64,000 nt of DNA, from positions 209,505,741 to 209,569,740 of the forward strand of contig CM041465.1 in the NCBI GenBank assembly GCA_023213395.1, given 5' to 3'. How positions within the stretch are numbered: the first letter of the stretch is position 1; the number at the start of each line of letters is the position of its first letter. Under the pieces are notes generated by a model. It saw only the letters and a program-made list of their open reading frames with translations. It had not been told where the DNA came from and ran no database searches. Of this stretch, positions 1,876 through 64,000 are shown piece by piece. The stretch is from Cycas panzhihuaensis. Lineage: Eukaryota > Plantae > Cycadophyta. The position numbers and the translations under genes are program-made.

Positions 1876-3350
1876 CTTGGTATCAGAGCTGATCTTTCAA
1901 CCTGCTTACAGAGCAAAGTCTCCAGTCTGTCTTCACAGCTTCCCTCATTGCAATAGTCGCCATTCAATGCAGCAATAACCTCTGTATTTTCAGCTATCAA
2001 ACAAGCAAATCTTGTGATAGTATTATGACGTCTTCCAAGTGAAAAATATGTGCAAAATCTGAGTCGCATTGGAGCTGTAATAAATATTATGGGCTGTAAT
2101 CAAATCATTTTTTTGCTTCGTTGAATAAACATATGGCTGGTTTTTATGTTTTGTTGATCTCTATGTTCCTCCGTTAAGTGATCCTCATTTCTTCTTGACA
2201 TAATTGTGTCCTCGCGTGAGCTACATCTAGCATCGTGTCTTCGGCTGCATTCTTTGTGAGATTCAAGAGATTGAGTGACGCCCATTTCTTCTTGACGTAA
2301 CTACGTCTTGCATTGGTTTCACCTGCGTTGGTTATCTCCACGTTCCTCTACGTACATAGCTTATCTCCATAGCTTTGGTGGATCTTTCTCTGTGTGAAGA
2401 CGCATTTCTTATGATTACACTCTTTGCATGCTGGCTTGGCGTCTACCCATTGTTCCACGCCTCTCATTTGATCGCCCACATGGCTATATTTTTTCTCCTT
2501 GGCTCCACGATGTGATGCCTGAGTGATACTCTATCTTCACGGCCTCTGCATTACGTGGATACGACTTTTGTTGCGTGGTTCTAGTGCGTGGCGAAGCTCC
2601 AGTATCTTTTTCTTACATTTGATTTCCAATTTTGATTTGCCTCTCTAGGTGTGAAACCGACAGAGATCCAGAGGCAAACAGAGAGTTTTATTGTTCAAAT
2701 TTGATTAGTTGGCTGCGAACAGAGGATTTGGGCAAAGTTGTTGGCTTCATTTCATTCCTGTACACTATGGGGTTGATGGAACTGCATCATATGGCCGCTC
2801 TAAATGATCCTAGTTGCATCCTCTCCTCACTGGAGAAATTAAATTGAAATTTCACAACTTCTACAGAGAGATCCAATCCCCTATATCCAAACAGTGTCGT
2901 CGTTTTTTTCAAATCCTGTCGTTTATTTTTATTTTTCATAAAGTTTAAAAACTTTATGTTATTAACATTAGCATATTCATAGAATATTCTATTTTTGATA
3001 AAGGCCCTTAACCTAACGTTGCTCTTTTATCTTCTTTTTTTAAATCATTTTTTAGTTTTTTAGGCCTGTTTTTCAATCTATTTTAGACAATTTTTCAATT
3101 TTTTTGAGATTTTTTTTTCTGTTCTTATTGCTTAAAACATTAAATTTTTTATTTTTAATTACAAAAATATTTTTAAATTAATCAAAAACATTAAAAAAAT
3201 AATATCTAACTGAACCACCCATTTACTAACCTTGCAAGGGGAACGGTTAGGACCCTTGAAGTTACCACTCTGCACACGCTAGTGGTCTTTCTCAAATTTT
3301 GTGGATATTAGAGAAGCCCATTAGCTATCAGGTGTATTGAGTGGCAGGCT

Positions 3351-4072
3351 TGTTGACTTAAAATCTGCTTTGTACTACAAGATCTTCACTTGTCAAGGTT
3401 CTCCACTATAGTCTAGGGTGTGTGCATATGGTCAACATACATATCTTTCATTCATTATGCCACATAAGTCCACAAATATGCTCATACACATAGAATCACC
3501 ATGCATTCCACATTAAATACATATGATATCCATGTAACTCTGTAATATTATTAGATAATAGTCAATACTTTATATCATATTCTGTCTGTACATGGCTGAC
3601 TGGTCAATAATACTAGGTCAGATCCCAAATAGATCACTTACTGGGCTCTCCATTGCTTCCCATGCATGGATGTGTTTAAATAACCTTTACGTCCCTACTG
3701 CAGAACGGTTGCAACTAACAGTCATAACCCTTTGCTTTCCCTAACAAATGTCTCTTCACTGTTAATCCATTCTTGTTATCTCCTTAATACGCCTATTAAT
3801 CCATACGATTGGGTCCATGTGTCTCTTTCCTTGTTTCATCCATTCTCGATATGTTCTTGACTGTGCAATATACGTTCGTTCTCTATTCGATGCGTTCCTG
3901 CTGTATAGTGTCCGTTCCTGTGAGGAAATGGTCCTATTTTCTGTGTATTTTCCATCTGTTCTTTTTCCTGAATGTATGTCAAACGGTGCCTTACAAAATA
4001 TCCACTATTTCATCTAGATTTTATCATATATTGCCCCTAACGGACGCACAGGAGTCAAATCTAACTGCAATA
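3351..4072 (-). repeat. 3' LTR of Gypsy C
   Basis: Homologous to 18166-18912. Confidence 0.93.
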
Positions 4073-4199
4073 TCTATTTGGGGTCAACAAAAATGGTTGA
4101 ACATCCGTGCTCAATTCTAAATTCTAAAAAAAAAAGAAAAAATTAATTTTGTCTTTCTCCTCCTCCCGTTTTGAGTTAGGACTGCTCTTGTAGTACCAA

Positions 4200-5267
4200 T
4201 TCCTTTGGTGGATCAGTGGCTCCCAATATGTCTTCATTGATTTGTGTTAATGTAGCTATAATTGCATCCTTTTCTTTAATTTTTTCTTGTAATTCTAGGA
4301 TTTGTATCTTGTACCCTTGTTCCAAGTCTTGTAGAAGTTGACTTATTTATGTACCCTTTTCACTTAAGGGTGATTGTGAAGAACCTTCCCCTGGTTCAGT
4401 AACCATCGGAAGTGGGGGTTCCATTTCCCATTCTTCTAGTGCCTCTTTTGTTTCTTGTTGTTCTCTACCCCTTTTTATGCCTCTCTTTATTACTTGTTTT
4501 TGCCTTGGTTAAAAGAGGGTCCCTAGTTTGTGTTGGATCCATTTTAACACCTTAGTCATTTCTAATTTGACCTACCTCTTTACACATGGGTCCTAAGTAC
4601 TGTTTGGCATAATATTCACCCATTTATTTATCATGGGCTCCCCGAGCCGAATATATAAGGAGGGAGGATTAATATCTAGACACTGCTGGAATAATAGTGC
4701 TAATAATAGCGATGGTTGTCTAAAGGGGTGAGTTTGAAGCTCCCCAAACTATTGCTCCATACGGTTTGCTAAAAATTCACACCAATTCATCTTCACTCCA
4801 TCCCGTGATGCTATAAGTAAGGGCATTAATCCTCCAAGAATGTATGTATGTATTTGTTTTGATAAAAATTTAGATACTAGAATTTTTGCGGCCCATTGCA
4901 GTTTTCTGTCCATGATATCTATAATCTTTATTCCGCCAGAATAAACCTGGGTGTCTGGAGCACATAATTCCCTTGTCCATATTTCCCGGTCTACTTCGAA
5001 TCTTTTCATGGCCATAGGGGTTTCACCCTCTTTGGACAATCCAATAATCTCATGAATAGCTACTGCATTTATTTTGACCTTCTCCCTATTAAATTTAACA
5101 GCTACAATAATTTGTTCCATGATTTCAGGCTCCCAATATAGTGGAGGCATTATCACAAAGTCCTCCCATCCTACTTGCTTGATCCTGGCTTTAAAATTTG
5201 CTAGTAATTCTTCGAATTCTCCCAGAAGTCTTGGCAAATAGGTCTCTTGTATCCCTGCAATTCTCAT
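4200..5267 (-). pseudogene. Extra ORF after integrase in C (Athila 'env-like'/plant transposon protein type)
   Basis: 172-aa ORF 4749-5267 (GWEDFVIMPPLYWEPEIMEQIIVA...MNWCEFLANRM) plus a broken coiled-coil-like tail, lying between integrase and the 3' LTR as in Athila. Confidence 0.6.
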
Positions 5268-5924
5268 CCTATGGCCGAAAGGGAATGTATGGAAAAAAAC
5301 AGATGTAACACTAGATTACTTTGAGGGACTTACACCTTCTTGCCTAAACATGCGTTCCCTGGTTCAGATGGCAATTAGGTGCCCTCTCTGCTCCAAGCGT
5401 TCTGCGTTTCCAACAATTATAGCCGACTGCTTCTTGGGAGAGTTGTATTACTTCTCTTTCTTCATATGTTTGATTGCCGAAATGATTCTAGGGTGTAGGG
5501 TTTTATATTTGTCCTTTTTTAATCCGTTCGGGTCGCATTCCTTTCTGGGAACACATGCATTCAACAATAGTCCATTATGTTCCCTTTTTGGAATGGTTCC
5601 GGTTCTAGCTAGCTTTATCTTGTCCTATTCCCTATTAGGAACGCATCTAATTCCGCTAAGTATCTTTGCTCTGCTTCCATTCCAATTCTGGAATGCAAGG
5701 TACAATTTCTTAGAATGATTGTTGGCTTTTGTCTAGATATATGATTTTGCAAGTTACGATTGGTATTTTTTCCTTTCTTTTTTTTTTTTTTTTAAGAGGG
5801 TTTTTGTGTTTATGCACCAATGTAGAGTCCTTGTTCTGGTACTAGGACAACTTTGGTTGTCTGCAAATATACATCCAGTTGACTATTACTGAAGAGGTAC
5901 TTTTTAATGGTAATATTTTTTTAA

Positions 5925-8478
5925 CTAATTGTCGTTAACTAGGGTGGGCAGCCAATGACTGTCTACCTCTTGTAACTTTATCGATCCGTTAGGATAGATA
6001 CATTCCACTTGGTAAGGTCCTAACCATCGCGGTTTCAATTTCCCGGGATGGGTGCAAAATTTATTGTCATACAATAGGACCTGTTCTCCTTCCTTGAACT
6101 GAGGGCATCTAAGGTGACGATCATGCCATGCTTTTTGTCTCATTTTTTCGATTTCTTGTAACCATTCTAATTTTTGTTTATCCTCATCCAGTTGGATTAG
6201 TTGCCATAATCGTTCTCGTAAGGATTTGAAGTCATCTAATCGGCAAGCCAAGGCGATTCTCAGGCTCGGAATTTGGAACTCGATAGGGAGTATAGCTTCT
6301 ATCCTGTACACCAACTTAAATGGTGTGTGTCTCGTAGCTTGCTTGTATGTTGTACGGAATGCCCATAAGACAAAGGGTAGTTTCTTTGCCCAATCTGCTC
6401 TGCCAATGTCACAAACTTTCCTTAAACAATTTTCCAAGATCTTATTGGAACTTTCTGCTTGCCCATTTGCACAAGGGTAATAACGCGTGGATTTGTTATG
6501 GGTGATCAGGAATGTTTCTATTAATTCCTTGATAACCTCATTAAAAAAATGGGCTCCTTGGACACTAATCAATTCGATAGGACATCTGAATCTTATGACG
6601 ATGATCTCATAGAGGAATCGGGCTGTACAAGTTGCATCTGTCTTACGTAGTGGTCTAGCTTCCACCCATTTCGTTGTATAGTCTGTAGCTACCAAAATAT
6701 AACGGGCTTGCATTCTTCTTGCAGCTGGCTTGATAGGTCCGATAAATTTGAACACCATTTTTCGAAGGGTGCCAGAGGAAGGATTGGGTTTAGGGGGTTG
6801 AAGTCCCTTCGATTGGGTTTCCCTACCCTTTGGTAATGGTTGCGCTTCTTACCCTATTAAACCTTATGTTTACATGTTAAGCCTATGTACTTTATTTTTC
6901 ATGTATTATTTGTACCTTTGTACTTTATGGGGTGACTTATCACTTAAGTGATAAAGTGCACACCCACATTCTTTCCTAATGACACAACATTGTCACTAAA
7001 GGGTCAAATGGACCCTCATGCACTTTTGCTCACTTGAAAACCCAAAGGACACATGTCCTACATGCAAGGCATGTACTTTGAATGTTTGACACTTATCAAA
7101 TATCCAATGCCTTAGGTCTCTTCTTTCACTCTATATATTGAGATCTCTTCTCATGGTTCTCATATAGAGTTGGAGTTGTATTGTTATGCTGCTAGTTTGC
7201 TAATCAAACTGCTATTCATTTGGAGATTGGGCCAAGTCCAACTCCTCACATTTGGTATCATTTTGCTCTCACTCTTTGTGCTTTGATCTTGCTTATGTTG
7301 ATCTCATACTTTCAGTGTTAGTCTAAATTATTTGCTTTCTAGAACTAGAGTGAATCTATCTCCTAGATCTTGGGTTTCATAGGCCTTTTGGCCCTTTCAA
7401 CATACCCAATTCTTCACATCTTCGAAAAGAGTCGGCCACCAAAATTCTGTTGTTAAGATTTTCCTCTATGTAATCCTGCATGTCCCCCTGCCACTCCTTC
7501 ATGAGCCTGAGATATCACTTGCTTCACCTTGTGGGGGTGAATGCACCATCGTAGAACATCATCTAGTCCTAATTAGTATAATTCTCCTCGGATTAGTTGG
7601 TAGGCCCCTGCTTTTCTTACTAAATTTCATTTTTGGGTCTTATCCATGGTTGGAGGACATTGTCCTGTGACCAAGAATTCGATTATATCCCGATACCACT
7701 TTATAGGAACTGATTCGATATTAAAGAGTGCTACATCCGGGAAGTCATCCAATACTCCTCTAGCCTTTTCTCCATTATGTATTCGAGAAAGTTAATCCGG
7801 GATGATATGTGCTTTCCTTGGTTTTACTATGATTCAGAAAGTGAATTCTTGGAACAACATAAGCCAACGACTGATACGTCCCCTTAACAACGGTTTGTTG
7901 ACCAAATACATGAGTGCCTGATGATCCACATAGAATATAAAGGGATTCGCCAATAAGTAATTGCAAAACTTTTGGAGGGCATACACCATTATGAGCCCTT
8001 CTCGTTCTCTTTTTGTATAATTATGTTCTGCCCTAGTTAATTTTTGGCTGGCAAAGTATATAGGCCGGTCCACATTGTTTTCGTTGGGCTGGGCTAGAAC
8101 ACAACCAATTGCATATTAGGAGGCATCAACATGCACATGAAATATTTTATTCCAATCAGGAAAATGTAATACAGGATCTGACACTATTGCTTGTTTCAGG
8201 GTTTCAAACATTTTTTGTTGTTCTGGCCCCCACTATCAATCTATTTCCTCTTTAAGGAGGTCTTCCAATGGTCTTGCTATCTCGGCATACCCTTTTACGA
8301 ATTTGCGGTAATATCCGGTTAATCCTAAAAACCCCTTTACTTGCCATTGGTTCTGGGTTGGGGGAAATGTAGGATGGCTACCACTTTTGCTAGGTTCGTC
8401 ATTAATCCTTTCTTACTAACCACGTCCCCGAATATTGCCGAAAGGTACCAAAAAAGTACATTTTTCTGCGTTCAAACA
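5925..8478 (-). pseudogene. pol: Gypsy C RT C-terminus, RNase H and integrase, split by solo LTR D
   Basis: LNAEKCTFL; RPIYFASQKLTRAEHNYT; GRISRWLMLFQEF; integrase core ORF 5925-6758 with a GPY motif (KLKPRWLGPY). Confidence 0.9.
6855..7402. mobile_element. Solo LTR D inserted in the integrase zinc-binding region of C
   Basis: Termini TATT(TGTT)...AACA; perfect TSD TACCC (6850-6854 and 7403-7407); integrase homology continues across it; contains a TATA-like ctatata. Confidence 0.88.
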
Positions 8479-9512
8479 TGTTGGAGGATAATGTTTAATG
8501 TGTACGTGTCCCATTGTATTTAGGAGTAATGCACATATGTGCAACCAAGTGGTCATTAAATTATTGGTCAATAAATAGGTGTTATGTGGTTGGTTGTGTT
8601 GGAAGTCATTTATCCCACATGTAACACAAGTCATACTACTCTCTCTCACTTATTTAGTATATAAAGGTGGTTGAGGTAGTATATGTAATCAAATCATCAT
8701 TAAGACTCATGTTGAGTCTATGATGCATGAATGTTCTGATATTATCTTATTTGTGTTATCTTAATACAAGCTTTGTTTTGTTCAATGATATTGTTGGATA
8801 TTGTTGGTGATGAATGCTTTTCATGTTAAAATCCAACATGGTGTCAAAGCAGGTTGCTGGTCAAACTTGTCATTGTGCAGGTTCGTTCCTTGGTTGTTGA
8901 TATGCGGCTCCATAAGAATTGAAGTGCTAGATTGAGGATTTATTTTTGGAAGGCGAAGTCCTATGGTCATCATTGCACCAAAACAGAATTTCCTTCGGGT
9001 AATATTGTTCCTTTCCTTGTTCCATAAAAAGGGAAATATCTATTAGGGTCTGAACTTTTTAAGATTTGGGTGGTGGAAACTTAAGTAAATTGCCAAGTTT
9101 TGGTTCTGCATGCATAAAGAAGTTAGCCACTGGTAAATTTGAAGCCACTCATATTCCTTGTATAATTAAGCAAAAAGGACCTCTATGTTGGAGATTATGT
9201 AAACCCTAAGTTAGAATGAGTAGAGCATGAATCACTCTCAGGGCTAGTGCTGGAAATAAACACTACAGAGATATTATATTTGGGCTGCTCCATAGCTGAA
9301 ATCAGAATGTAAAAGGCGAGCCATCTGCACAAACCGTGAGTGGCTACCATAAAAAGAAATCTGCAGCTCTCCACATCCTCAAAGGATTCCTCTGCATAGA
9401 AATTGAATTCCATAGCTATAATAAATTCTGAGAAGAAGAAAACCCTATTCTCTGTGTCCATTCAAATCCATATCAGGAGCTGCACATCCTGCTTGAAAAG
9501 AAGACTATACAA

Positions 9513-9599
9513 GAGGAATGCATGAACCACGTGATTGACCTCAATCAAGCTCTGTCCTGGTGGCTTTTTCAACCCTCTATCATTCATCATTGCTCTCAC
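9513..9599 (-). pseudogene. Captured PLS-class PPR gene fragment (E/E+ motif)
   Basis: Minus strand reads VRAMMNDRGLKKPPGQSLIEVNHVVHAFL, matching the E-motif consensus MxxRGxKKxPGxSWIEVxxxVHxF. Confidence 0.85.
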
Positions 9600-9980
9600 A
9601 AATTATTGCTAAACCCATTGAGCACCCCATCTAGATGGCCCATAAGCGAAATCGGTGAACTCTCGAGCGATGACCCTTTGAAATATCGCCAAGGAAAAGG
9701 GCGACAAGATCGATGACGATGATCCATCATTCAACCACCAGCTTATTGCTCCCATCGGTATAGCAACTGCGTCTCCTTGACGAATGCTCGCCAACTGTTC
9801 GGTCTCCATTTTAGGAATGACCATCCCCACAATTCCAGATCCTTCCAGTACATAGCAGAGCTTTGAAGAGTCTGAGTAGTGTGACAAAGCGAGGCCACGG
9901 TGGCTGAGAATGAGCTTGGCTGCACCCACCTTTGCCTCTGATAGCATGCTTACATCGGAGCTTTCCCAAACGTGATATAA
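9600..9980 (-). pseudogene. Captured 11S-globulin/glutelin-type cupin fragment
   Basis: HVWESSDVSMLSEAKVGAAKLILSHRGLALSHYSDSSKLCYVLEGSGIVGMVIP...IRQGDAVAIPMGAISWWLNDG, then EFTDF and GVLNGFS after frameshifts. Confidence 0.88.
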
Positions 9981-10206
9981 TCCAAAGTTCCTGAGCTTGG
10001 AGCTGATGGAATTGCCTAAGAATAGGACTGCATCCATTGTTGCTGATATTGGATAAACTTAATAGTATAGTTGCAAGCAAGGATTAACCTGCTGCTATAG
10101 TGAAGCGATATGTTGTTGCCCTTGGGACTGAGAAGCGCAACCGCTCATTCAAAGCGATTGGTTGTGCACTGTATTTGCCTTGGGAGGTGCTTTGCATTGT
10201 AGATAT

Positions 10207-10832
10207 TTGGTTAAGGGTCTGGACTCTTTTCGGATATTGGGAAGAAGGCCAAAGATCTTCTTACAAAGGACTACAAATATGACCGGAAATTACCGTGACT
10301 ACGTCTGACAAAGTTGGACTGGGATTTACATCAACTGGTATAAACAAAGGGGGATTTTTCTGTGGTGATACCAATACACAATACAAGTACCAGAATTCCA
10401 CTATTGATGTGAAAGTGGACACAAATTCTAATCACCATTGATGAAATTGTACCACGTGCAAAGGATTCTCGATTTGTTGCCGGATCAAAAGTCCGACAAG
10501 TTGGACTTGCGATGCCGCATGACCATGCCGACAGTTCAAGCATTGGTTTGACTCTAAATCCTATAGTTGACTTTTCTGGGACAATTGGAAGTGAGGGTTT
10601 TGCAGTTGGTGGTGAAGTAGGCTTTGATTACGCATCGTGAACATTCACAAACTACAATGCGAGGATAGGACTTACAAAGCCTAAAATAAGTGCTGCCATC
10701 ATATTGGTTGACAAGGGATACACCCTGAAAGCTTGATATCTGCATGTCGTGAATGCTATCACAAAGACTTCTGTTGTTGCTAAGATTTCTCAAAGGTTTT
10801 CAGCAAATGAAAACACTTTCATTGTGGGGGCT
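10207..10832 (+). pseudogene. VDAC: Captured, intron-less VDAC (mitochondrial porin) fragment
   Basis: (M)VKG.GLFSDIGKKAKDLLTKDYKYDRK, FTSTGINKGG, KYQNSTIDVKVDTNSN, SIGLTLNPIVDFSGTIGSEGFAVGGEVGFD, SAAIILVDKGYTLKA*YLH, SQRFSANENTFIVG; contains frameshifts and stops. Confidence 0.92.
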
Positions 10833-11135
10833 ATGGATAAAGCTATTACATAATGTATGAAAGAAATCAGATGCTGGCATGTAATAAGTTCTATATTAGA
10901 AGGCATAAATTATGGTCTTTTGTTTCTGTGATCACATTCTCAACGATATTCTTTGAAATAGTTAGACAACATTATTAATGCAACTACTTGGTCATCTCTG
11001 ATTGGTGTGTATTGCAAGGGCTTCCTATTACTCCTTGTTGAGAGTGAATTGTCTGCCCTTGGCCAGATTTTCTCTGAACTACTGTAGTTAGCTCTTCATT
11101 ATAACATGCCATCAGTTGTTTTATGTAATACCAAG
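10833..11135 (+). pseudogene. Probable captured P-type PPR fragments
   Basis: MDKAI..., NATTWSSLIGVYCKG and GQIFSELL*...MPSVVLCNT resemble PPR motif helices. Confidence 0.5.
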
Positions 11136-11397
11136 GCCCTGAGGTTGACATCGTTTCCAGGATAGTGGAGGATTAAGAATGCATTGTTGGTTTCATGACA
11201 ATTGGGTTTTCCAAATTTATTTGATATAAGAGATAGGGGCCTGTTGCACCAGATTCCCTTCTGCATCTACAACATGCAAATTTTTAGGAGTCAGTACTGT
11301 AATTTGAAGGATTGTGATTATTAAAGATCCAGTGCTTTCCATCTCTATTATAAGTCATGAAGTTCAGTAATTTTATGATCTGCATGAAGAAGAAGAG

Positions 11398-11481
11398 CAC
11401 TTGAGCCTGGCAAGTAAATTTTGCTTGCGCCTGATTGACTCCATTGAATCATCCTCTACTAGAAGGATAGTTAAAGATCTA
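11398..11481 (-). pseudogene. Possible response-regulator receiver-domain fragment
   Basis: RSLTILLVEDDSMESIRRKQNLLARLKC resembles receiver beta1-alpha1 (ILLVEDD/N...). Confidence 0.35.
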
Positions 11482-11631
11482 TTACACAGATGGTCTGAGG
11501 CATTTGAACCATACTTCAGAGACAGATGTTTTGGTATATGATTTGAGGTATTTTTCTGCTGATTTGACAGACTTTTTTCAGGTAGAAGTGGGTCCATGAA
11601 TCCAACATAATGCACTTTTGATCATCTCACC

Positions 11632-12552
11632 ATGGAGTTGAGTGACATCATAGTTTTTGTAACTGAAAAAAATGAATATTGGTTGTCGAATCTCCCTTTT
11701 CCTTTATCCAAATATGTTGGAACTCATTTTCGTTTTTGGGCAATTAAAATGGAATGCATTTTTATAGCCAAAAGACTATGGGAATTTGTTATTGGCACTG
11801 CATTGTTTAACAAAGAAGGGGAGGAAAATTTTAGGAAGAAAAACAAAGTAGCTATTAATGTGATGCATGCAACCTTTGACAAAGAGAATCTCCATCTTTT
11901 ATATCATTTTCTTATCTATGCGCTTCAGCATACTGATTTAGCAAAAGAGGCATGGAATTTGTTGAACGATGTGTACGAACGGAGTCCTGAAGAGGTACAA
12001 GAGGACCTTGAAAGGGCAAACATAGTTATTGATGATTGCAATACATATAAGGAAGATGATGAAGATTGTACCAGTGATGCAAATGAAAAGGTTTGTGAAG
12101 AAACTAATGAGATTACTGATTAAACTACTGTTGAGTGCATTCTTAAACTTGAAAAGCATATTGAACCTACTACAGGTGATTGTGATGAAGCAATTGAAAT
12201 TCCTCTAGATGAATTCATTGCTTCAAGGGAGGATGAAGTTGATGAAGTGAAATATGTTTCCATTCCTGATTCAGTTACTGGTTTTAATCCTAATTGCTCT
12301 CAATATGATGAAGACTTTCCACTTAAAGTTGAAGGAATTGTTGAGAAAGAACACATACAGGATGATGATGACTTACAAAATGTTGATGTTCATTCATCGT
12401 TTGATGACTTGTCTTCATATTTTGATGTTGACGATGTTGATTCTTCTCTTGTTGACTTATCTTCAAATGTTGACATTTGTTCAATAATTATTGATCAATC
12501 ATATGTTGAAGAAAATAAAAGCAAACAAGTGGTGACCAAAACATTGATTTAA
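11632..12552 (+). pseudogene. gag: Copia-type gag N-terminal domain with an acidic tail (element E)
   Basis: KYVGTHFRFWAIKMECIFIAKRLWEFVIG...AKEAWNLLNDVY is typical Copia gag; followed by a D/E-rich extension broken by a stop. Confidence 0.8.
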
Positions 12553-13308
12553 GACATACTTGATGTACACGTTAAAGATGCTTTTGATGAGTACATACAG
12601 GATCACCTGACAGGTCTACATTAGGCTCAAGTTGATTTGGTTGTGATCTACTACACATTTTGCATGACAAAGGATTCCTTATTGCATATGAAGATGAAGA
12701 AGGCAAAGTTCTAGGACCATCACTCTAAAGGACTACCTCAAAGACGACACTGCAGGAATGAAGACAAAGATCAAGGAGAAGACATTGTGTTCAAGACTAC
12801 TCCAAGATCAAGACACTGCAAATTCAAAGAATGCAAAATACATGTTGGTCAAATGTTTAATGTCGCAAGTCTAGTGTCAAGTGTCATATTAGTCTTTAGT
12901 ATTCAGTCTTTTTGTAGTCTTGACATTAAACATTATGGGGAGGTGTTGGAGGATAATGATTAATGTATACGTGTCCCAGTGTATTTAGGGGTAATGCACA
13001 TATGTGCAACTAAGTGGTCATTAGGTTATTGGTCAATAAATAGGTGTTATGTGGTTGGTTGTGTTGGAGGTCATTTATCCCACATGTAACACAAATCATA
13101 CTACTCTCTCCCACCTATTTAGTATATAAAGGTGGTTGAGGTAGTATAAGTAATCAAATCATCATTAAGACTCATGTTGAGTCTATGATGCATGAATGTT
13201 CTGTTGTTATCTTATTTGTATTATGTTAATACAAGCTTTGTTTTGTTCATTGATATTGTTGGATATTGTTCGTGATGAATGCTTTCCATGTTAAAATCTA
13301 ACAAAACA

Positions 13309-14060
13309 TAACTTATTCTCCCCGCAAGTTTGTAGCATTGTTCTTAAATTTTTTATATGGTTTTTCTTTATACCATATAGAGTCCAATCATCTAGGAATA
13401 TAGCGACTGTTTCCCTTACTAACTTCTTGAATATGTTAAAGCACAATTCTTTGGAAGGTTGTTGGGGCATTAGTGAGTCCAAATGACATAACTTGATATG
13501 CATAAGTTCCCCATTCGGTCACAAAGGGTGTTTTATGTTGATCTTCAAGTGCGATGCTCACCTGATTGTATTCGTTCAACCCATCCATGAAAGAATAAAC
13601 TTCCTTTCCTCCTACGGTTTCTGGGATGTTTTCTGTGAAAGGAATCAGAAAGGGGTCTTTCTTGGTGACTTTATTAAGTTGTCGATAATCTACACACTCG
13701 AATTTTCCCATTTTTCTTGGGTACTACCACTATGAGCTTACCCAGTCACTATATTCAATCTCATATATGTATCTTGCCTCTAGCATCTTGTCCAATTCTA
13801 CTTTAACTTTCTCCTTATATCGTGTGTTCATTCTATATGGTCTCTGCTTAACTGGTTTTGCCCCTTCCACTAGGTCGATATGATACATCCCAATCTCAAG
13901 TGGGATTCCTTTGAGATCTTTGTATGACTAGGCAAATACATCTTGATATTCCTCAAATAATGCTTGAGCTTTTGCTACCGTCTTCTCATCCCAATAATCA
14001 CTAATGGTAATATTCTTCGATTCCGTCTCTGTCCCAAGGTTTATTTGAGTAGTTATGGGT
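13309..14060 (-). pseudogene. pol: Gypsy C reverse transcriptase, N-terminal part
   Basis: CVDYRQLNKVTKKDPFLIPF; YSFMDGLNEYNQV; TEWGTYAYQVMSFGLTNAPTTFQR; IFLDDW. Confidence 0.92.
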
Positions 14061-14544
14061 TCTCCATGTTGTACTCCCTTTTTCGTTTGGTGGGCAGGTA
14101 TGTCTTCTACGTTTCATTGCTCGTATCTTAGTTCGGTGTACTCTGGAGGTAAATTTAGGATCTCTTTTTTCTCCCCCTCTTCTTCATTGTCGTTGATTTT
14201 TTGTAGTCTTAATGTTTTCAATTGACATTAGATGTTTTTCTACTTTTTTACCTATATCCCTTCTATTTTTTAGAACTTTATGTATTACCTAGTTATTGGA
14301 GGAGTATGAAAAAGCTTTGGTGAATGAACGTTCTATTTTTTCCCAAGCTGTTAATTTGGTTTGTTCTCGTTTCAAGAACCATGTTTTTGCTAACGTTCCC
14401 AGTGTATGGATAAATAAGTGCCTCCAGTGTAGTTTAGGGATACTCCAATGCTTCCAAAGATGTCTGCACCTAAGAAGATGTTTGTTAGGGCACTCTCCTA
14501 CCAAGAATCCTGAAATTAGTAGGTTTTGGGGTGGGTCAAACCTG

Positions 14545-14831
14545 AGACAGAAGGTTGACTGTAGACTGTCCCATGTTTGGAGGGTATAGTGGTGGGCTAT
14601 ACACCACTACCATGCGTGGTCTTGTAGGGTAGCTACGAAGTCACAGATCCATTGGGTTTTATCCAATATCCTATAATATAGCCAATGTTCCATACATTGA
14701 ATTAGATGATTCGTACCTTCCATTTTCTTTCCTTGGAATGAGGGCAATTGTTTTTGCCAATTTGTTCTATCTTCGGGTATGAGTTTAGTGAGGTAGATAT
14801 CTTCTGTTAACCCTTGGAGGTTATCATTCAT
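14545..14831 (-). pseudogene. Second capsid-like (retrotrans_gag-type) segment between protease and RT of C
   Basis: LPSFQGKKMEGTNHLIQCMEHW...FVATLQDHAW*WCIAHHYTLQTWDSLQSTFCLRF follows the gag-CA pattern (F..L...A..W......TW..L...F..RF). Confidence 0.55.
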
Positions 14832-15236
14832 TTCTTTTTCACTGAGGGGATTAACATAAAGGGACTTTGGGGAATCTAGAGGAAAAGTTTCGATAGGGAG
14901 GGGAATTTCTACCTCAACCTTTTAGTCTTCGGCAGAAAGGGTTATAGGGGTTTCCTTAGAGTCAAGAAGGAGATTGGCCAGATCTCTGAAATTGGCTCTA
15001 GGGAATGAGGGTAGGGATGGGGGGTTGGAAAGGAGGTAGGGATGAGGGTAGGATGGGGTCTTAGAAGTTAGTAAGTTTACGTATACCTTGTTCCTAATTT
15101 GGAACTCAACCTTTACCAAGTTATTATTATCTAATGATTCATTAGGATAAGTAACATCCATATAATCTAAATTATTATTTAATTCATTGTCAATTGAAGA
15201 ACATTTAGATAATAAATTACAGCAAAATGGGTGGGG

Positions 15237-15830
15237 TTATATCTCATACAAGTTATCCATCCAATACTTGATCATGTTGGTGGTTCCTTCCCCGTCTGAT
15301 GATGCTTCTGATGCCACTTCTCCATAGATGTTGGGTTCAAACTCCTGAGTATCATTCATATCGGCGGTCTCTTCTGTCATATGGTACAAGTTGGCTTCGT
15401 CGAAGGTTGAAGAAGTTTCCTGTGTTGCTATAGTGGTGTTGGATGCATTATCTGGAATCACTTCCACTGTATATCTTCCTTTCGTCAACATGGGAAGGAT
15501 GACCTCATTTCTTCCATCAGCAAGTGTAAAGGTCACGTCTCTCCAACTTTGCAAGCAGTCTATTTGGTATAACCACGGTCTTCCTAGTAATGTCGGATAA
15601 ATAACCATGTCCTTGACGGTATCAACGATTATAAAGTCTATGGGAACAATAATATCGGCTACGTTCACTTGTATATTCTCCAAACGCCCTACTGGTTTCA
15701 CTAATAGCTCATTTGCTAGTTTTAACGAGTAATTTGTGGGCAATAATCGTGGATTTCCCAATTTCTTCCATGTCTAGGTGGGCAATACATTTACCGTAGC
15801 TCCTCCACCCACAACAACATTCTTTAGGGT
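15237..15830 (-). pseudogene. Gypsy C aspartic protease
   Basis: VVGGGATVNVLP (mutated DxG site); LKLANELLVKPVGRLENIQV; YPTLLGRPWL. Confidence 0.85.
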
Positions 15831-16210
15831 TACCCCTAGAATGCTTATATCAACTGAAGAATCCAAGTCGCAAGAAGGTTTGATTTAATGTAAACTTTGG
15901 GAGGCTTCCTTTGGGTGAATCTTTCCTTCCTTTATCCAATCAATGACTTTTCCCAATGGGATGGTTAGGTCTAATTGTTTGACTAGGTCTTCCATAAGTA
16001 TCAACTTTTGTAGGAGCTCTTCCAACTTAGGTGCCTCCCCTAGGTTTTCTCCTAATGCTTTTTCTTCAATTTTCTTATTCCTTCTTTGATATGCTTGTTT
16101 TATTTCTAGTTTCTCCACTGGTAAGGTCTTGGTTGCTTCCTCTTTTGCAGTTTCCTCTAAGGCCATTTTCGCAGTAGCGAAATGGTCAATTTTTAGTCTC
16201 GAATTTGGGT

Positions 16211-19251: not shown

Positions 19252-22200
19252 ATGGCACTTCAAATGATTACAGCTAATACCATTACACTTTCTGGCAGTG
19301 ATAATTTTTTGGCTTGGATGAAATAAGTTAAAAACATATTGATAATAAACAAACTTTGGCCTTATGTTTCTAGAAAAAATCCTATGCCAGTTCCCACTCA
19401 AGAGCCTAATGATCCTCAGAATCTCATTCCTCCTAATCCTGATGTTGTAATTGCCTTTTAAGAGTTTGATGAAGTTGCCCTTTCCTTTTTACACCTATCC
19501 TATGAAGATAATGTCAACCAGAACATCAAACTTGCCCCTACCTCTGCTTATACTTAGAATATCATATGTGCGCTCTATGAAAGGAAGGGCAACACTAGGG
19601 CAATGATGCTCAAAGCCGAGCTTTACTCCATTCCATTTACAAGATCTATAGCAGCTCATTTGTCCCATATCAAGGTGACCTTGTATCTTACATAGTCAAT
19701 GTTTTGCCACTTGGTTATAACTCCCTCATATCCAATCTATCTCATACAAATCGACTTGCCACTATTGATTTCAATACATCTGAGGGTCTATTGCTCCGAG
19801 AAGAATGTATTCAAAACCGTTCAGGGAATCCAAGTGCTTTCTCTTTCATACCAGCATTTGCAGCCCATCATAGGAAGACAACAGTGTCCATAGTTGACAC
19901 ATCAATTTGGTTCAATGAATTTGAACCAACACCCATATCAACCACGTCAACCTCGACCACCTTATAATCCTTAGATTGTTTGTCACTATTGTGGCAAACC
20001 TGGACATATAGCACCTGATTGCAGAAAAAAGAGAACTGACCTCCAACAACAACAGTTTTAGAACCGCCCCAAAATCATGGACGTGGAAGTTATTAGGGAC
20101 CACAAAAACAAAACCAACCTAATTATCAAGGACTGAGGAGACAAAATTAAAATTCTCCTCAAAGGAACCAGCAGAATAGGAATCGTAACCAGAGACATAA
20201 TCAAGGAGGCCACATGGCCAACTCTCGAAATCTTTTCTTTGCTGCTTTATCAACTCATCATTCTGACATATCTCGATTGATTGATTTAGGTGCCTCTCAA
20301 CATATGACTGGTTCAGAAGAACTTCTCACTAATACAAGACCAATTCAAGATCAATCTATCACTTTTAGAGATGATGGTATTCTAGAGGTCGCCAAGATTG
20401 GCAACATTCCTATCTCAACAATGTTTTCTATGTACCTGGCATGACAAGCAACCTCTTATCAGTTAGCCAGATAAATAAACAAAACTTTGATGTTTTGTTT
20501 AGCCATCTTGGAAAATGCCTGATTACAAACTTGAATGGCAACCCAATTGCCTCAAAATATGAAGATCAAGGACTATACAAGCTTGATGTTGTAATCAGAC
20601 CATTGATCCAGTCACATGAATTTGGCTCTTGTAGCAATTCAGCTTCCACTTTTGATCCTTCTGCTTCAACATCAGATTTAGATGATCAATTTATTTCAAA
20701 GGCATTTGTTTCTCCCAGACTTCCAAAAGACTAGTTATGGCATCAATGCCTAGGTCACTTGAACATGAACAGCCTTCATCTACTTTATAAATTGAATATG
20801 GTGCATGGCATACCGAATATAAAGCAGACTAAATGCCCATTGATCCAGTCACATGAATTTGGCTCTTGGCTCTTGTAGCAATTTAGCTTCCACTTTTGAT
20901 CCTTCTGCTTCAACATCAGATTTAGATGATCAATTTACTTCAAAGGCATTTGTTTCTCCTAGACTTCCAAAAGACTAGTTATGGCATCAATGCCTAGGTC
21001 ACTTAAACATGACCAACCTTCATCTACTTTATAAATTGAATATGGTGCATGGTATACCAAATATAAAGTAGACTAAATGTATTTATGAGGCTTGTGTTAT
21101 GGACAAACATCATCGGGCTCCATTCAGATTAGATGGAAGAGCTTGGCGTGCCAAGGAACCTTTAGACCTGATACATTCAAATATTTGTGGCCCCATGTCC
21201 CAAGCATCCTTTGGACGCTATCATTATTTTATTACATTTATTGATGACTATTCCAAAAAAGTGTGGGTATATTTCTTGAAGCATAAATCAGAAGCCTTTG
21301 ATAAATTCAAAGAATTTAAGCATGGCATTGAACTTGAATATGGAAAGCCCCTCAAAATTCTTTGTTGTGTTAATGGAGGTGAATACACATCAAATGAGTT
21401 CACCCAATTTTGTAAGGATAATGGCATCAAATAGTAGTTTTCTACCCCATATATGCCTCAGCAAAATGAAGTTACTAAGAGAATGAATTGGACCTTGGTT
21501 AGTAAAGGCAAAGCCATGCTTGCCGCCAAGAATTTGGGACTTCAATTCTGGGTTAAAGCCCTTTATATAGTAGCATATCTCACAAACAAAAGTTCAACTA
21601 AGGCAATATTAAACATTATTCCTGAGGAGACCTGGTCAGGTCAAAAGCCTAGGTCTCACATTTGCGCACTTTTGGTTGTATAGCGTCCATTCTCATACCA
21701 GAAAAAACAAAGAAAAAAAATTTAGATGATAAGAGCAAGAAATGTATCTTTATTGGTTATCAACTTGGTTGTAAAGCGTATAAATTGTATGATCCTACCA
21801 CCAAGCAAATGTATACATCTTAGGATGTCATGTTTTTAAAAAGAGAACCAGGATTTGGATATCATACAGATTTCATTCTTTGATGATCAGTCTGATAAAG
21901 CACCTGTTGCTCCACCTGCTCCACAAAATGTTCCTGTAGAACATATGCCTCCTGCATCAGCATACACTCTTGGTACATCGTCTACACCACCTACCTCTAC
22001 ATCTACATCTACTCTAATCAACCCTTCAAAAGACATTCAGGATGAGGATACTTCAAAGCGGCTACCTAAATGGTACATGCAGACAATCTCTTATGCTCCT
22101 TCACCACCACAACAAGCAAAGAGGCGATCAAAATACAGATTATCTATTAACTTTGCCTTAATAGCAAAAATATTGTCAGCTCCAAAACCGTCCAATTTTG

Positions 22201-29132: not shown

Positions 29133-30188
29133 TGATCCAGGAGGATCTACCATATGTTTACAGGATGCAGAAAATGCTAGGCATTGGCATAACTAAAAGA
29201 GATATGGCCAAATGATATCAAAATTCTATGAAATTTTGTGTAAAGGGAGAAGACACATCCCACTTGATGTGTACAAAAGGTGGGGTTCAGAAAATATCAT
29301 TTGATTAGAGTTTAAGCCTTGTCTTTGCATAAAAATTAATCCCACAGCTAGCAGAAAAAAAACAGAAAATATATATTATAATTATATGAATAGAAATATG
29401 GCCAAATGACATCCAAATGAGCTAAAATTTTGAGGAAGCGGAGGAGACATGCGTTTCTATACGTGTACCAAATTTGAGCTGAATTGGAGTCCGTTAAGGT
29501 CAGTTACAAGCCGCAACTTTTAAGACTTGCAGGAAGGCCACTTGGACAACAGAAAAACAGCAAATACATATTATTATCAAATGAATAAAAATGAAGCCAA
29601 ATGACATCCAAATGAGCTGAAAATTTGAGGAAGATGAGGGGACATGCGTTCCTATACGTGTACCAAATTTGAGCCAAATTGGAGTACGTTAAGATCTGTT
29701 ACAAGCTGCAACATTTTAAGAATTGTATGAAGGCCACTTGGACAACATGCATTCTGGTGGTTAGTGGTTATACTTGCATGATTGCCACTTGTTAAACATG
29801 CAATTCAGGTTTCTTTCTATAAATTGAGCCCTTCTACAGGTTGGAGAGGTGGTTCTTGGAGACTTGACTTGGGAAGCATCCTTGGAGAAGCATATGGAGG
29901 GTTGGAGTCCCCCCTTATGGTATACTTGTAACATTTATTCCTTGTAATTTTACCATTCTTTTGCTAGTTGATTTCTCCACCATTAAATGGAGATTTTCAT
30001 GGTTTAATAAAAGTATTACTCCTCATACTTTTGGATCAATGCCAAGAATAAATTATTTGTTGTAGAATTTTCCTTTCATGGGCTCATTATTGTTTTGATG
30101 TTATTGAGCTTTCTACACTAACTCCCAGGATCTCAAGGAGGACAAGTTGATAATTGATTTCTTCACCAACTAAGCTCTTTTGGGATCA
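29133..30188 (+). repeat. 5' LTR of G, with three ~195-bp internal subrepeats
   Basis: gccaaatga motif recurs at ~29207, 29401 and 29597. Confidence 0.95.
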
Positions 30189-44006: not shown

Positions 44007-46492
44007 TGTTATGAATCAACATACCCTAGTTTTAATATATTTAAAAGGGCTTTAGCAAAGACAATTTGTCACGTAACATTCTTCAGAGCTTTAGCCTATT
44101 AGAGGAAACCCATAAGCTATAACAATCTTAAAGGAGTCTTTGCCTTAAAGAGGATTAATTATAATTAGAATCGCCCATTATTGTATTTGCTTATTGTTAA
44201 TTTATTAATATTTATGTCCACAAACTACTGTGTTTCCATTACAAATCATTGTTGACCATAATAAATGATATTAAAGCACAGGCTTATTTCGAGCACTTAA
44301 CTTTTTCAAAATAATAATGCCATAACACCATAACATAAATAATTATGGCTAAGAATATAGTAATAATAAAAGGCATAAAATGATTGATGCCCACTGAAAA
44401 GCAAATCAATTAGGCTAACCCAAGATCTAACAACAAGCCTTTTAATTGCAACAACTTAAATATATATTAGTGGTACTGCAATTGTTATAGTTGCCAACAC
44501 CTAACTTGCTCTCCAATGGATCCTTGTTAAGGGATTTAGGTTGTTCTCATTCCAATTAATAAACTCAATCAGCCTAGTATTATTACTTATTATCACTACC
44601 TCTGCATGTTAGGATCAAGTAATTTATGTGTATATTGCCTTCCTTATATATAATAGTTGTTTCTCATGCTCTCTCTTTGGAAGTGAACCCTAATTCTCTA
44701 TCACTCGTCACTACTATAATAAGCTTTTATCCTATTATTGAGGGTTAATAGGGTAAATATTTTAATAAAGTGTCATTTACACTAACGCTATGTAATTTGT
44801 TAATTTATCATGAATCATTAAAATACTGTATAAGCACACATTGGCCTTTTATGTAATAAATACACCCCTTCTAAAAGTTGAGATTTGGTGTAAATATTGA
44901 CTTTGAAATTACTACAATTATCCAAGTAGTAAGAACACCATTAAAGAAATTATAACTAATTTAATAAGCCATTCACAATTTCACAGTCTAAAAATAGTTC
45001 ATACTAATACATGTATGGCTCAATCTTTGAAACAAATATATAGTTGTCAATAAGATTAATCAAGTAGTGAATAATTAGAAGGAAAATTAGTTGAGATGTA
45101 AGGATTTGATAAGGTTGAAGCCACCAAGCAGATTGAAGAAAAACTTAAGCAACTTAAAGAAGAGCCCTGATAATTAAGCAACTTCAATAATATATCTCTA
45201 TCAAAACATATTTGCCATAAAAGAGCACATGGCTCTTATCCCCTATTCACCTCTTTAAAAAAATCATCCCCTATAATTGGTTATAAATCTTATGGCATTC
45301 ATCTTGCATTACCTAAGCCATCATTTTCATTATCTATATATTTCTCTTATTTACCACTTATCCATCCCTTACCTCATATCTCTAGTTCTCTAAACTCTCT
45401 ATATAGGCCATCCCTTAGCTTCATCTTTAACATGCATTACTTTATTCCCTTATCATTCTTATTTCAACCTTCAATCCATGTACCTTTCTCCTATATGCCT
45501 TTATTTCATCCTACTGATCCCTTACTGCCAACATCTTGCTCTTTATTTCTTATGCATCTCTTTTATATGGTTTATATCTATACTAGAAACCTACCACGCC
45601 CCCTACATCATTATTCTTATCCTCTTATTCCTTGTCCTCCCTACTTGTCTTATTACTTTATTAAATCATTTCTTTGATTCATGTCCCTAATTCTCATTCC
45701 CTTCTCTCTCTATAAATATTTATATTTCATTCCTACCCTTGATACACCTTCAATTTGCATCCTTAACTAAACCTCATATATATTACCTAATGTGCCTATT
45801 AATTCAAATCTCATCACTTACTTCATTGCCCCTTATATATCCTCTTAATTATTACACAACAAAGACACCTTAACTATATCCCTAAATTTATGCCCCTTGT
45901 CCACACCAATGTCATTCCCTTATTTCCCCTTTTAAGGACAACTTCCTATGGATAGAATGTGTAAGTAGGACTCAAGACCTATAACAACTAAAGTCTATAA
46001 CCCATAGGTCTTAAGACCATTCACATGTAAGGTCTTATACAAAAGTCAATTAAGATAGGATATTATTACAAATACAAATATTACAAATAGGGTTGTTATC
46101 TAAAGATGGCATAAAAATCATGAATATTAAGGCAATGCTACTCTAAAATAAACAAATCATGTAATTACTTGGTGAAATAGAAGAATATGGATCTTGTCAA
46201 TTACAATGCTTTAAGGGCAAAGCATTTTTCTCGAGGGGGACTTGTTACAAACTAGCATACCCCAATTGTATAGTATATTCAAAGGGACATTAGTAAAAAC
46301 CATTAATTATGGAATGTTCTTTAAAGCATTGGCTTATTAGAGGAAATCTATAGGTTGCAATGATCTTGGAGGAGCCCTCACCTTGAAAATGACTTGTTAT
46401 CATCAAAATCATCCATTGTTGTACTTATTTATTGTTAATTTATGCTGATAATTCAACCATAATAAATAGTGGTAACATTTAGGCTTGTTACA
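44007..46492 (+). mobile_element. Old chromovirus-derived LTR element H with 18S rRNA cargo
   Basis: Diverged LTR pair at ~44007-44291 and 46243-46492; PPT cgaggggga; chromodomain remnant YLVK*KN near 46165. Confidence 0.7.
44272..45066 (-). pseudogene. 18S rRNA: Heavily decayed 18S rRNA fragment (5' ~800 nt)
   Basis: Reverse complement follows 18S landmarks: 5' end (agattaatcaagta ~ ggatcaaccaggta), catgtatggctcaatctttgaaacaa, gaaccctaattctc, ccaatggatccttgttaagggatttag, aagccttttaattgcaacaacttaaatata; pervasive C>T/G>A changes. Confidence 0.9.
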
Positions 46493-56244: not shown

Positions 56245-62305
<6,061 letters not shown>

Positions 62306-64000
62306 TATTGAGATTTGAGTAATATTACTGCCCTTCCAAGGCTTGTAATGGATTAGTTGGTGGTAGCACAATATATATTTCAAGACCATTTGGGTTAAAA
62401 GAGAAAAAGTAAGGTGGACCTAGTTTACTTTCAACATGATTGATATGCCTTTGTTTAACTATGAGATCCTTCCTGTAAGGTGTTAGAATATAATGTCTTA
62501 TTCTAGGAACATTATAAAAAGGGGTCAATATGTTTAAGACCCTCATTACATTTAATCCATATGTTTAATATTACAACCATGTAACGATTACAAAGTTTGT
62601 CATATATAAAGGAGGTTTCCCTCTATCAATAATCAAGAGAGTGATTCCATTCTTTCTCACTGTTGAGGGTTTGATTTTCTACATGGTATTAGAGCAAGGA
62701 AATTTGCTTACCTGAAAAGGAATAGTCAAAGAATTATTGAAGGAGGATAATAATACTCGAAGACAAAGGCTGATTTAAAATGTTGAGACAAAGATCAAAG
62801 TTTAGAAGACCAAAAGGTTATAGAAACTCCATTGTACGAAATCGTATGGACTTGTACGGATCAATTTTTAAAGGTTATCAGACTTCGATAAAACTTGGCT
62901 AGATTGAAGATCTCATCGAGAGCATCATTTTCTTCAACTAGGTTGAATTGATCTGAAGTTGTCTTGAGGTCATTTTTCCCCTTTGAATAATTCGTGTAGA
63001 TTTAGGACTCTTATAGCAAATTTCTCTTAAATTTCTTTGAGTTGTTGGGTAATATCTATTATGAACTTAATGTTTATGCCTTACTAAGATACCAAGAACA
63101 ATTTCCAAGAGTATCTCTCCAAATTTAAAGTTTTTTTAGCACTTTTCTAAAAAACCCTAGCTGTCAGTTTTGCCATATGAGGCATGTTTTCACCCAAATG
63201 AGAAATTGTCTCTAAAATCTGACTGCAGAGCTGAACTCGACTTAAGACTCTCTTTGATTTGACATACTCATTTCTTCAATATGTACACTTCAATTTTTGT
63301 ACGAAAATTCGTATGACCATACATTCTAGCACTGTTCATAGGCATCAAACCCTCTAATATTCATTCTTTTGACTCTGTTAGCCCTTTTGGATCTACCCTC
63401 AATAAGTTCATCATGGCATCCTTAATTTCAAGCCTAAGTGACACTTATAAATTGACCGAGAATAACTATAATGTATGGAGGATTAAAATTGAAGCCCTCT
63501 TACGTGTAAAAAATGCATGGGAACTGACCACAAAAGGAGAAAAAATGCCTAATGTTGAAGGAGATGCTCAAAAGAATTAGAAAGAAAGAAATAATGTAAA
63601 AGCAATAACATTAAAACTATTTGTTTCTGATTATTTATTGATATATATAGACAAATTCAATACTTGCTCTTAAATCTGGAAAACCCTAGAAAATCTCTAT
63701 GCCTGAAAGAATAGAGTAAGGGTTATTATTATGAAAGAAGAACTATTTAAACTAGTTATGAAAGAAACAGATATTATAGCTGACTTCATTCACAAGGTTA
63801 CCACTATCTGAAATAAACTTCTGAGTACCGGAGAAGAAATTTTAGGAAAAAAAATTATTGAAATGGTAGTGGGAAAACTTTCCAAGGTCTTTGATGTGAC
63901 CATTAATACCATTACCAATATCAACATAATTGAAGAAATATCACTTGATGATCTGACTAGCATGTTGATGAGATAGGAACAAAGGAACAAAAGATACAAG
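62306..64000 (+). mobile_element. Copia J (same lineage as A): 5' LTR, PBS, leader and gag start; runs off the window
   Basis: LTR 62306-62683 ending ...CTACA; PBS tggtattagagc at 62684-62695; gag at 63413 (MASLISSLSDTYKLTENNYNVWRIKIEALLRVKNAWE) resembles the gag of A. Confidence 0.85.

Follow-up and report, generated by a model that had tools for sequence, protein, structure and literature searches.

A mosaic of host-transcript fragments, probably captured during reverse transcription, in the leader of a defective copia-derived LTR retrotransposon of Cycas panzhihuaensis

How do pieces of several unrelated host genes, in both orientations, come to lie side by side within a single retrotransposon? 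The question is raised by a stretch of 64,000 nt from Cycas panzhihuaensis (assembly GCA_023213395.1, contig CM041465.1), referred to here as the window, the numbering of which is used for all positions below. Our study revealed that this window contains a defective, non-autonomous Ty1/copia-derived long terminal repeat (LTR) retrotransposon of 4825 bp, and that the 2.8 kb leader between its primer-binding site (PBS) and a short gag-like open reading frame (ORF) holds fragments that appear to derive from at least three host genes. The reading we prefer, to which we assign a probability of roughly two in three (0.68), is that this mosaic was captured from host transcripts during reverse transcription and was then spread with the element as a minority subfamily.

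The anatomy of the element was resolved to the nucleotide. A direct pair of LTRs on the plus strand (8479–8838 and 12944–13303, 360 nt each) differs at 20 positions, giving an identity of 94.4 % and a Kimura two-parameter (K2P) distance of 0.058, and both copies have TG..CA ends, the 5′ copy also a TATATAAA box near 8660. The pair is flanked by the 5 bp target-site duplication (TSD) AAACA, with its left copy at 8474–8478 and its right copy at 13304–13308. Next to the 5′ LTR lies a PBS-like stretch on the plus strand, TGGTGTCAAAGCAGG (8839–8853), of a degenerate tRNA-iMet type; read as TGGTGTCAAAGC from 8839, it has 2 mismatches in its first 12 nt to the usual copia tRNA-iMet site. A short polypurine tract (PPT), GGGGAGG (12937–12943, plus strand), abuts the 3′ LTR. 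Contigs from four public runs with four organism labels (X1, X4, X5 and X7) were aligned to 8279–13503, and all four runs contained the empty site, in which 8473 is joined to 13304. This joint skips 4830 nt, which equals the 4825 bp of the element plus the 5 bp of the TSD, which fixes the boundaries exactly and identifies the insertion as a true transposition. The LTR, PBS, PPT and TSD architecture that had been proposed from the sequence-only reading of this locus was therefore borne out. The K2P distance places the insertion at roughly 2.2 million years (My) ago using a rate of 1.3e-8 substitutions per site per year, or at roughly 4 My using 7e-9. No further copy of the element was found within the window, and an Rfam scan gave no match inside the element.

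The vehicle itself encodes little. Its sole sizeable sense ORF, of 163 aa (11632–12123, plus strand), appears to comprise the N-terminal domain of a copia gag, in which DUF4219 is joined by the first ~75 positions of Retrotran_gag_2, with an acidic tail behind it. The Pfam match to DUF4219, at 4.4e-4, lies below the Pfam cut-off, and a HMMER search of 1.84 billion representative proteins with this ORF returned seven relatives. Five of these (P0001–P0005) are short ORFs of 72–139 aa, 38–63 % identical and present on single Logan contigs, and the remaining two (P0006 and P0007) are plant DUF4219/Retrotran_gag_2 proteins, matched at 3e-5 and 3e-4. The closest relative, P0001, matches positions 1–76 of the 172 in Retrotran_gag_2 (E 0.007), and a profile of six family ORFs was aligned to P0006 by hhalign with an E value of 9e-4. 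The homology of the predicted protein appears to cover the N-terminal domain of copia Gag and to end there. Its acidic tail is common to relative P0005, the motif DANEKVC included, and the frame continues open to ~12552 but for single stops, and is rich in D and E. Because the tail is shared with a relative and the frame stays open this far, the predicted design of a short Gag N-terminal domain with an acidic tail is taken to be a trait of the family, and not the decay of a single copy.

No CCHC knuckle (C-x2-C-x4-H-x4-C) occurs in any frame of 8839–12943; no ORF or Pfam match for pol (protease, integrase, reverse transcriptase or RNase H) lies between the LTRs, and the 3′ internal region (12124–12936, plus strand) gave nothing in Pfam. 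With no pol of its own, the element is non-autonomous and would be mobilized in trans. The initial description of the element as carrying only gag is overstated, since what is encoded is a truncated N-terminal domain and not a full Gag. When proteins of 0.55–1.75 times the query length were searched, no relative of similar length was found for this ORF or for the cupin frame described below. A second copia gag-like stretch was observed at the edge of the window (63386–63598, plus strand), which is 28 % identical to ORF residues 9–73 (tblastn E 0.012).

One of the pieces in the leader is a fragment of VDAC (eukaryotic porin) on the plus strand at 10207–10850. Three stop-free pieces match the Porin_3 profile in order, albeit in three frames: profile positions 3–23 (10221–10283), 27–76 (10289–10432) and 106–156 (10488–10637), with E values of 6e-5, 5e-4 and 2e-5 and a joint span of 417 nt. 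These colinear matches substantiate the earlier assignment to VDAC. By eye, the colinear match begins with a TTG in the start position (10207) and continues to ~10850, or ~205 of ~276 codons. The piece is decayed, with several frame changes and in-frame stops, and there is no room in it for an intron. As plant VDAC genes have 5–6 exons (PMC12300895), an intron-less and colinear copy of this length supports an origin from a spliced mRNA. The proposal that the cargo stems from host mRNA is thus supported for this piece, which does not have the form of a contiguous genomic locus with its introns. In run X7, contigs break at 9728, 10432 and 10627/8, and the protein homology in the window runs through all three of these positions; the breaks may correspond to the positions of introns in the donors.

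Upstream of VDAC, and on the opposite strand, an 11S-globulin-like cupin fragment (9612–10058, minus strand) forms one open frame of 149 codons that includes the N-terminal cupin domain. This frame matched Pfam Cupin_1 at 7.4e-15 (residues 24–119) and the N-terminal domain of 11S globulins in the PDB with E values down to 9.3e-10, which confirms the cupin that the sequence-only reading had recognized. A Met at 10037 precedes the expected start of the cupin profile by ~4 residues, and the homology fades near 9640; the piece probably begins at or near the start of its donor. Within ~10–40 nt of the end of the cupin homology lies a third fragment (9465–9602, minus strand), for which identity as a PPR E motif is probable. 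This fragment displays the signature GLKKPPGQSLIEV at 9537–9575, and the pattern G-[LVIM]-[KR]-K-x-[PAS]-G-x-S-x-[IVL]-E-[VILM], chosen after the match was seen, was found once in the six frames of the 64 kb window and in none of 3000 shuffled versions of the region. The single occurrence of the signature favours the PPR E motif that had been suggested, whereas the Pfam E_motif match is weak (0.18). Directly downstream on the minus strand is an open frame of 88 aa (9198–9461), covered by 1–2 contigs per run. That this frame is a decayed C-terminal part of the PPR piece, such as a DYW/E+ continuation, is a guess by eye, for which Pfam, PDB and Atlas gave no match.

The geometry of these pieces suggests how they may have arrived. 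The cupin (minus) and VDAC (plus) fragments diverge from their start positions across a spacer of 169 nt (10038–10206), which presumably consists of two 5′ untranslated regions (UTRs) in head-to-head contact. The reading we consider most likely for this cargo is capture during reverse transcription. Under this model, members of a high-copy family, consisting of LTRs and a right arm encoding the gag N-terminal domain with its acidic tail, would be mobilized in trans, and switches between co-packaged nucleic acids would have built host fragments into the element as it was reverse transcribed. The fragments incorporated in this way would be the PPR E-motif piece (minus), a 5′ portion of the mRNA for an 11S-like cupin (minus) and three quarters of a spliced VDAC mRNA, counted from its 5′ end (plus). 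Having copied one mRNA to its 5′ end and run off, a polymerase may jump onto the 3′ end of the run-off cDNA of another, and both the cupin and the VDAC pieces would reach their start positions and diverge 169 nt apart because such a jump leaves exactly that arrangement. Pieces copied from RNA and pieces copied from cDNA would end in opposite orientations, so that sense and antisense segments sit together, and the mosaic would afterwards have been copied along with the element. Broken or partial as they are, the fragments would travel as neutral passengers.

It could instead be proposed that the cargo arrived as DNA, either because a Pack-MULE, CACTA or Helitron element inserted into a master copy, within its leader, or as filler during double-strand-break repair, and was retrotransposed only thereafter. 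Cargo from several genes in mixed orientation is a typical feature of Pack-MULEs and Helitrons (PMC13317346), roughly half the leader lacks an assigned identity, and an imperfect 33 nt inverted repeat lies around 10855–11131, all of which would suit an arrival as DNA. However, Pack-type capture copies genomic DNA, whereas the VDAC piece lacks introns over ~205 codons, and both the cupin and the VDAC fragment reach as far as the start position, as run-off cDNAs would. There is also no target duplication around the whole cargo, and no terminal inverted repeats were found to span it, although Helitron ends were not specifically searched for. The missing terminal inverted repeats and the spliced VDAC together argue against an insertion of the Pack-MULE or CACTA type, and we consider arrival as DNA to be improbable.

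The remainder of the leader is less readily interpreted. Identified host sequence amounts to ~1.2–1.4 kb of the 2.8 kb, leaving ~1.4 kb without an assigned identity, and the initial impression that the leader was tiled almost end to end with host gene pieces was therefore overstated, since only about half of it is accounted for. The stretch following the PBS (8854–9150, plus strand) is common to part of the family and gave nothing in Pfam. Downstream of VDAC, the stretch 10855–11131 is enclosed by the imperfect inverted repeat, the two arms of which (10855–10887 and 11099–11131, 33 nt) are 76 % complementary and delimit 277 nt; it may represent a small foldback, an insert resembling a miniature inverted-repeat transposable element, or chance. 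Two further identities that had been put forward for the leader were not upheld. A P-type PPR on the plus strand came down to an 11-residue Pfam match at E 0.08 (10986–11018, within the inverted repeat), and a receiver domain at 11376–11621 on the minus strand found no Pfam match at E≤1, a best PDB match of 1.2 to an unrelated structure and no usable match in Atlas.

A further stretch without an assigned identity (11295–11554, plus strand) is represented by a contig with 7 differences in 260 nt. In X7, a contig joins 11493 to 10219 with 9 letters between them and reads through to an intact VDAC N-terminus, and at least 46 nt ahead of this intact VDAC start match the window at ~11448–11493. Part of the 11.3–11.5 kb stretch thus looks like a VDAC 5′ UTR, although it is located downstream of the VDAC coding piece. 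When 10090–10206, upstream of the VDAC start, was compared with 11375–11500, the VDAC 5′ UTR-like stretch, no similarity was found between them.

Is the mosaic a peculiarity of this copy, or does it belong to a family? The family was viewed through contigs, and their summed depth, which does not equal copy number and includes donor genes and paralogues, was 3,000–50,000 over the LTRs, 400–1,300 over 8804–9150, 12–350 (mostly 50–300) over 9150–11430, 280–1,170 over 11429–11603 and 3,000–16,000 over 11604–12944, the ORF and 3′ region (3000–15,000 within 12124–12936). At 11604, the start of the high-copy right arm, the depth jumps to ~12,500. Distinct contigs per site show the same pattern, with 43–69 in the ORF region in run X1 versus 1–9 in the cargo. 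As the LTRs and right arm are 10–100 times deeper than the cargo, most family members would be without this cargo. Searches outside these runs added nothing: neither protein scans of metagenome and viral contigs nor a search of metagenome contigs for an exact 23 nt LTR word found a family member, in collections that hold no plant DNA of such kind. In X1 and X7, we also observed contigs that join 8509/8510 to 12991/12993 with 7–25 other letters between; these are LTR variants of the family, or forms of it resembling solo LTRs, in which the sequence close to the LTR start differs.

Several contigs cross the internal junctions of the mosaic. In X4, a contig spanning 9988–10182 passes from the cupin start into the spacer, in the identity class of 87–92 %, and three contigs (X1 10684–10958, X4 10663–10927 and X4 10793–11076), likewise of 87–92 % identity, cross the end of VDAC into the next stretch. 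A contig in X5 (9607–9787) lies near the cupin/PPR junction but begins at too short a distance from it to pass as bridging by the 31-letter rule. The cargo is accordingly no one-off rearrangement, as junctions are crossed in the runs of other organism labels. An identity of 87–92 % is too low for orthologues of an insertion 2–4 My old, and several variants are present per site, which together indicate that the mosaic belongs to a multi-copy subfamily spread by retrotransposition.

The same depth contrast invites a broader proposal, namely that the family is a recurrent vehicle for gene capture, a ‘Pack-LTR’ in which the LTR–PBS and the gag N-terminal ORF with the 3′ region are constant and the slot between them is refilled lineage by lineage. 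The 10–100-fold drop in depth falls exactly between the PBS and ~11600. In X4, 22 contigs align rightwards from 11632, while their leftward sequences are unlike the window and mutually different, such that heterogeneous loose ends accumulate just before 11631 (agreement 0.68). The number of contigs along the cargo varies from 1–2 to 9, suggesting that copies share different subsets, and two contigs (X4 record 10 and X7 record 27) match a portion of the cargo and continue into unlike sequence. These partial contigs could be other mosaics, but could equally be donor genes or introns; other copies may have short or diverged leaders or nested transposons in place of host genes, and donor genes contribute to the depth sums. 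The depth contrast is consistent with the claim of a PBS–ORF region that varies across the family, and we regard recurrent capture as possible yet doubtful. Equally tentative is the specific form it might take, in which a fixed PBS–ORF slot is repeatedly filled with spliced transcripts in either orientation by end-to-end template jumps, with the Gag N-terminal/acidic protein perhaps favouring the co-packaging of cellular RNA.

Capture of a single mosaic during reverse transcription, followed by its spread as a minority subfamily, has its own difficulties. A mixed orientation calls for template switches involving both RNA and cDNA, or for antisense transcripts, which is more elaborate than classical transduction. 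The evidence for splicing is drawn from plant VDAC genes in general, and PPR genes are usually intron-less. As the family is seen through contigs, other copies may carry all of the mosaic or just a part, and the inclusion of donor genes and paralogues in the depth sums bears on this reading too. The X7 joint between 11493 and 10219 suggests that a rearrangement, or a second capture, took place beyond the simple model, and the half of the leader that lacks an assigned identity counts here as well.

A last possibility is that the mosaic was selected for a function, either as a source of small interfering RNAs (siRNAs) directed at several targets or as a decoy, as the sequence-only reading had envisaged, or because the cupin frame (142–149 codons) is an expressed new gene. 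The siRNA/decoy idea has already been published and tested as ‘epigenetic conflict’ (bioRxiv 10.1101/777037; PMC13477047), and the concept is supported for maize transposable elements (TEs) generally (bioRxiv 10.1101/777037). The fragments could in principle feed siRNAs against their donor genes, and the cupin frame shows no break over 149 codons, in contrast to the many breaks in VDAC. However, an intact frame of 149 codons at such divergence would be expected by chance with a probability of ~0.1 (a rough estimate, not computed with a tool), no listed run that contains the stretch is on record as RNA, and conifer TEs with captured fragments gained no methylation advantage (PMC13477047). We therefore judge selection for a function very unlikely, and retain the reading in which the captured fragments are passengers.

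From ORF translations judged by eye, the insertion lies in the pol gene of a gypsy element on the minus strand; gypsy reverse-transcriptase ORFs (13291–13711, minus strand) are continuous across the empty site, and an RNase H part is located at 7834–8073 (minus strand). Two direct-repeat pairs (3368–3984/18195–18823 and 1415–1714/23709–24008), 82–92 % identical, suggest nested LTR elements, of which the inner pair probably belongs to the gypsy element hit by the insertion and the outer pair encloses both. Elsewhere in the window, a 2.65 kb (AT)n microsatellite at 57671–60325 (~660 ATAT copies, 91 % matches) explains a bin of 4 % GC and the long spurious ORFs found there. An Rfam match to eukaryotic small subunit (SSU) rRNA at 44165–45066 on the minus strand (211 bits, E 8e-60, model positions 1–1831 in ~900 nt) represents a degraded, internally deleted 18S-like fragment within a stretch of 31 % GC. 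Tandem duplications were also observed at 20622–21079 (214 nt units, 96 % identity) and 29358–29716 (164 nt units, 87 %).

Few cases of capture by plant LTR elements have been dissected, among them Bs1, Rider/SUN, Veju and BARE-2. A copy with at least three donors, one of them clearly spliced, and with head-to-head 5′ ends would provide a concrete footprint of reverse transcriptase stitching cellular RNAs together. If a slot that varies family-wide proves true, it would offer many independent junctions from which the rules of retro-capture could be derived, and would allow tests of epigenetic conflict on defined donors; if the slot is recurrently filled, the family would be a retro-element counterpart of the Pack-MULEs. 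Taken as one locus, the example is instructive but not out of the ordinary.

Gene capture itself is well known. The capture of gene fragments by plant TEs, LTR elements included, is widespread (PMC2774510; PMC13477047; reviewed in PMC13317346), and tens of thousands of capturing TEs are present per angiosperm genome (PMC13477047). In maize B73, 425 LTR elements with gene fragments, reflecting at least 189 captures, were reported, and in no case did one LTR element combine pieces of two or more nuclear genes (PMC2774510). The element described here is similar to these in carrying host exon fragments within an otherwise ordinary LTR element, and differs in having at least three donors. At least three donors in one LTR element is less common, Bs1 being the classic exception, and the same is true of a cargo placed in the leader, of the mixed orientation with head-to-head 5′ ends and of a short Gag N-terminal protein in a high-copy family.

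Bs1 of maize is also defective, has a gag-like part and contains pieces of processed transcripts from several unrelated genes that were amplified with the element (PMC13317346). Its three transduced segments form one expressed hybrid sense ORF, whereas the segments in the Cycas element are for the most part broken, occur in both orientations between the PBS and the ORF, share no fused frame with gag and are carried by a high-copy family. TR-GAG elements (Chaparro et al. 2015, PMC4350172) are likewise non-autonomous, with LTRs, PBS, PPT, a sole gag-related ORF and no pol. However, the reference TR-GAG elements measure <4 kb and specify a full GAG, in which 433 aa include UBN2 as well as a zinc finger (PMC4350172), whereas the Cycas element is 4825 bp (~2.1–2.4 kb without its cargo) and encodes a 163 aa gag N-terminal domain with an acidic tail, has no knuckle and covers Retrotran_gag_2 at most to ~76 of 172 positions. 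Judged on its predicted protein, the element resembles TR-GAG but lacks the defining feature of that group, a complete GAG with a zinc finger.

Pack-MULEs, Pack-CACTA elements and Helitrons are alike in having constant ends, variable cargo and multi-gene mosaics in either orientation, but they capture genomic DNA with introns and move as DNA, whereas the Cycas element has LTRs, a PBS, a PPT, a 5 bp TSD and a spliced VDAC, and no flanking terminal inverted repeats. Veju_L, BARE-2 and the transduction of oncogenes by retroviruses share with it the acquisition of foreign sequence through template switching between co-packaged molecules (PMC13317346). In those systems a single foreign segment is carried in sense orientation, whereas several segments are carried here, and the head-to-head 5′ ends of mRNAs imply jumps involving both cDNA and RNA.

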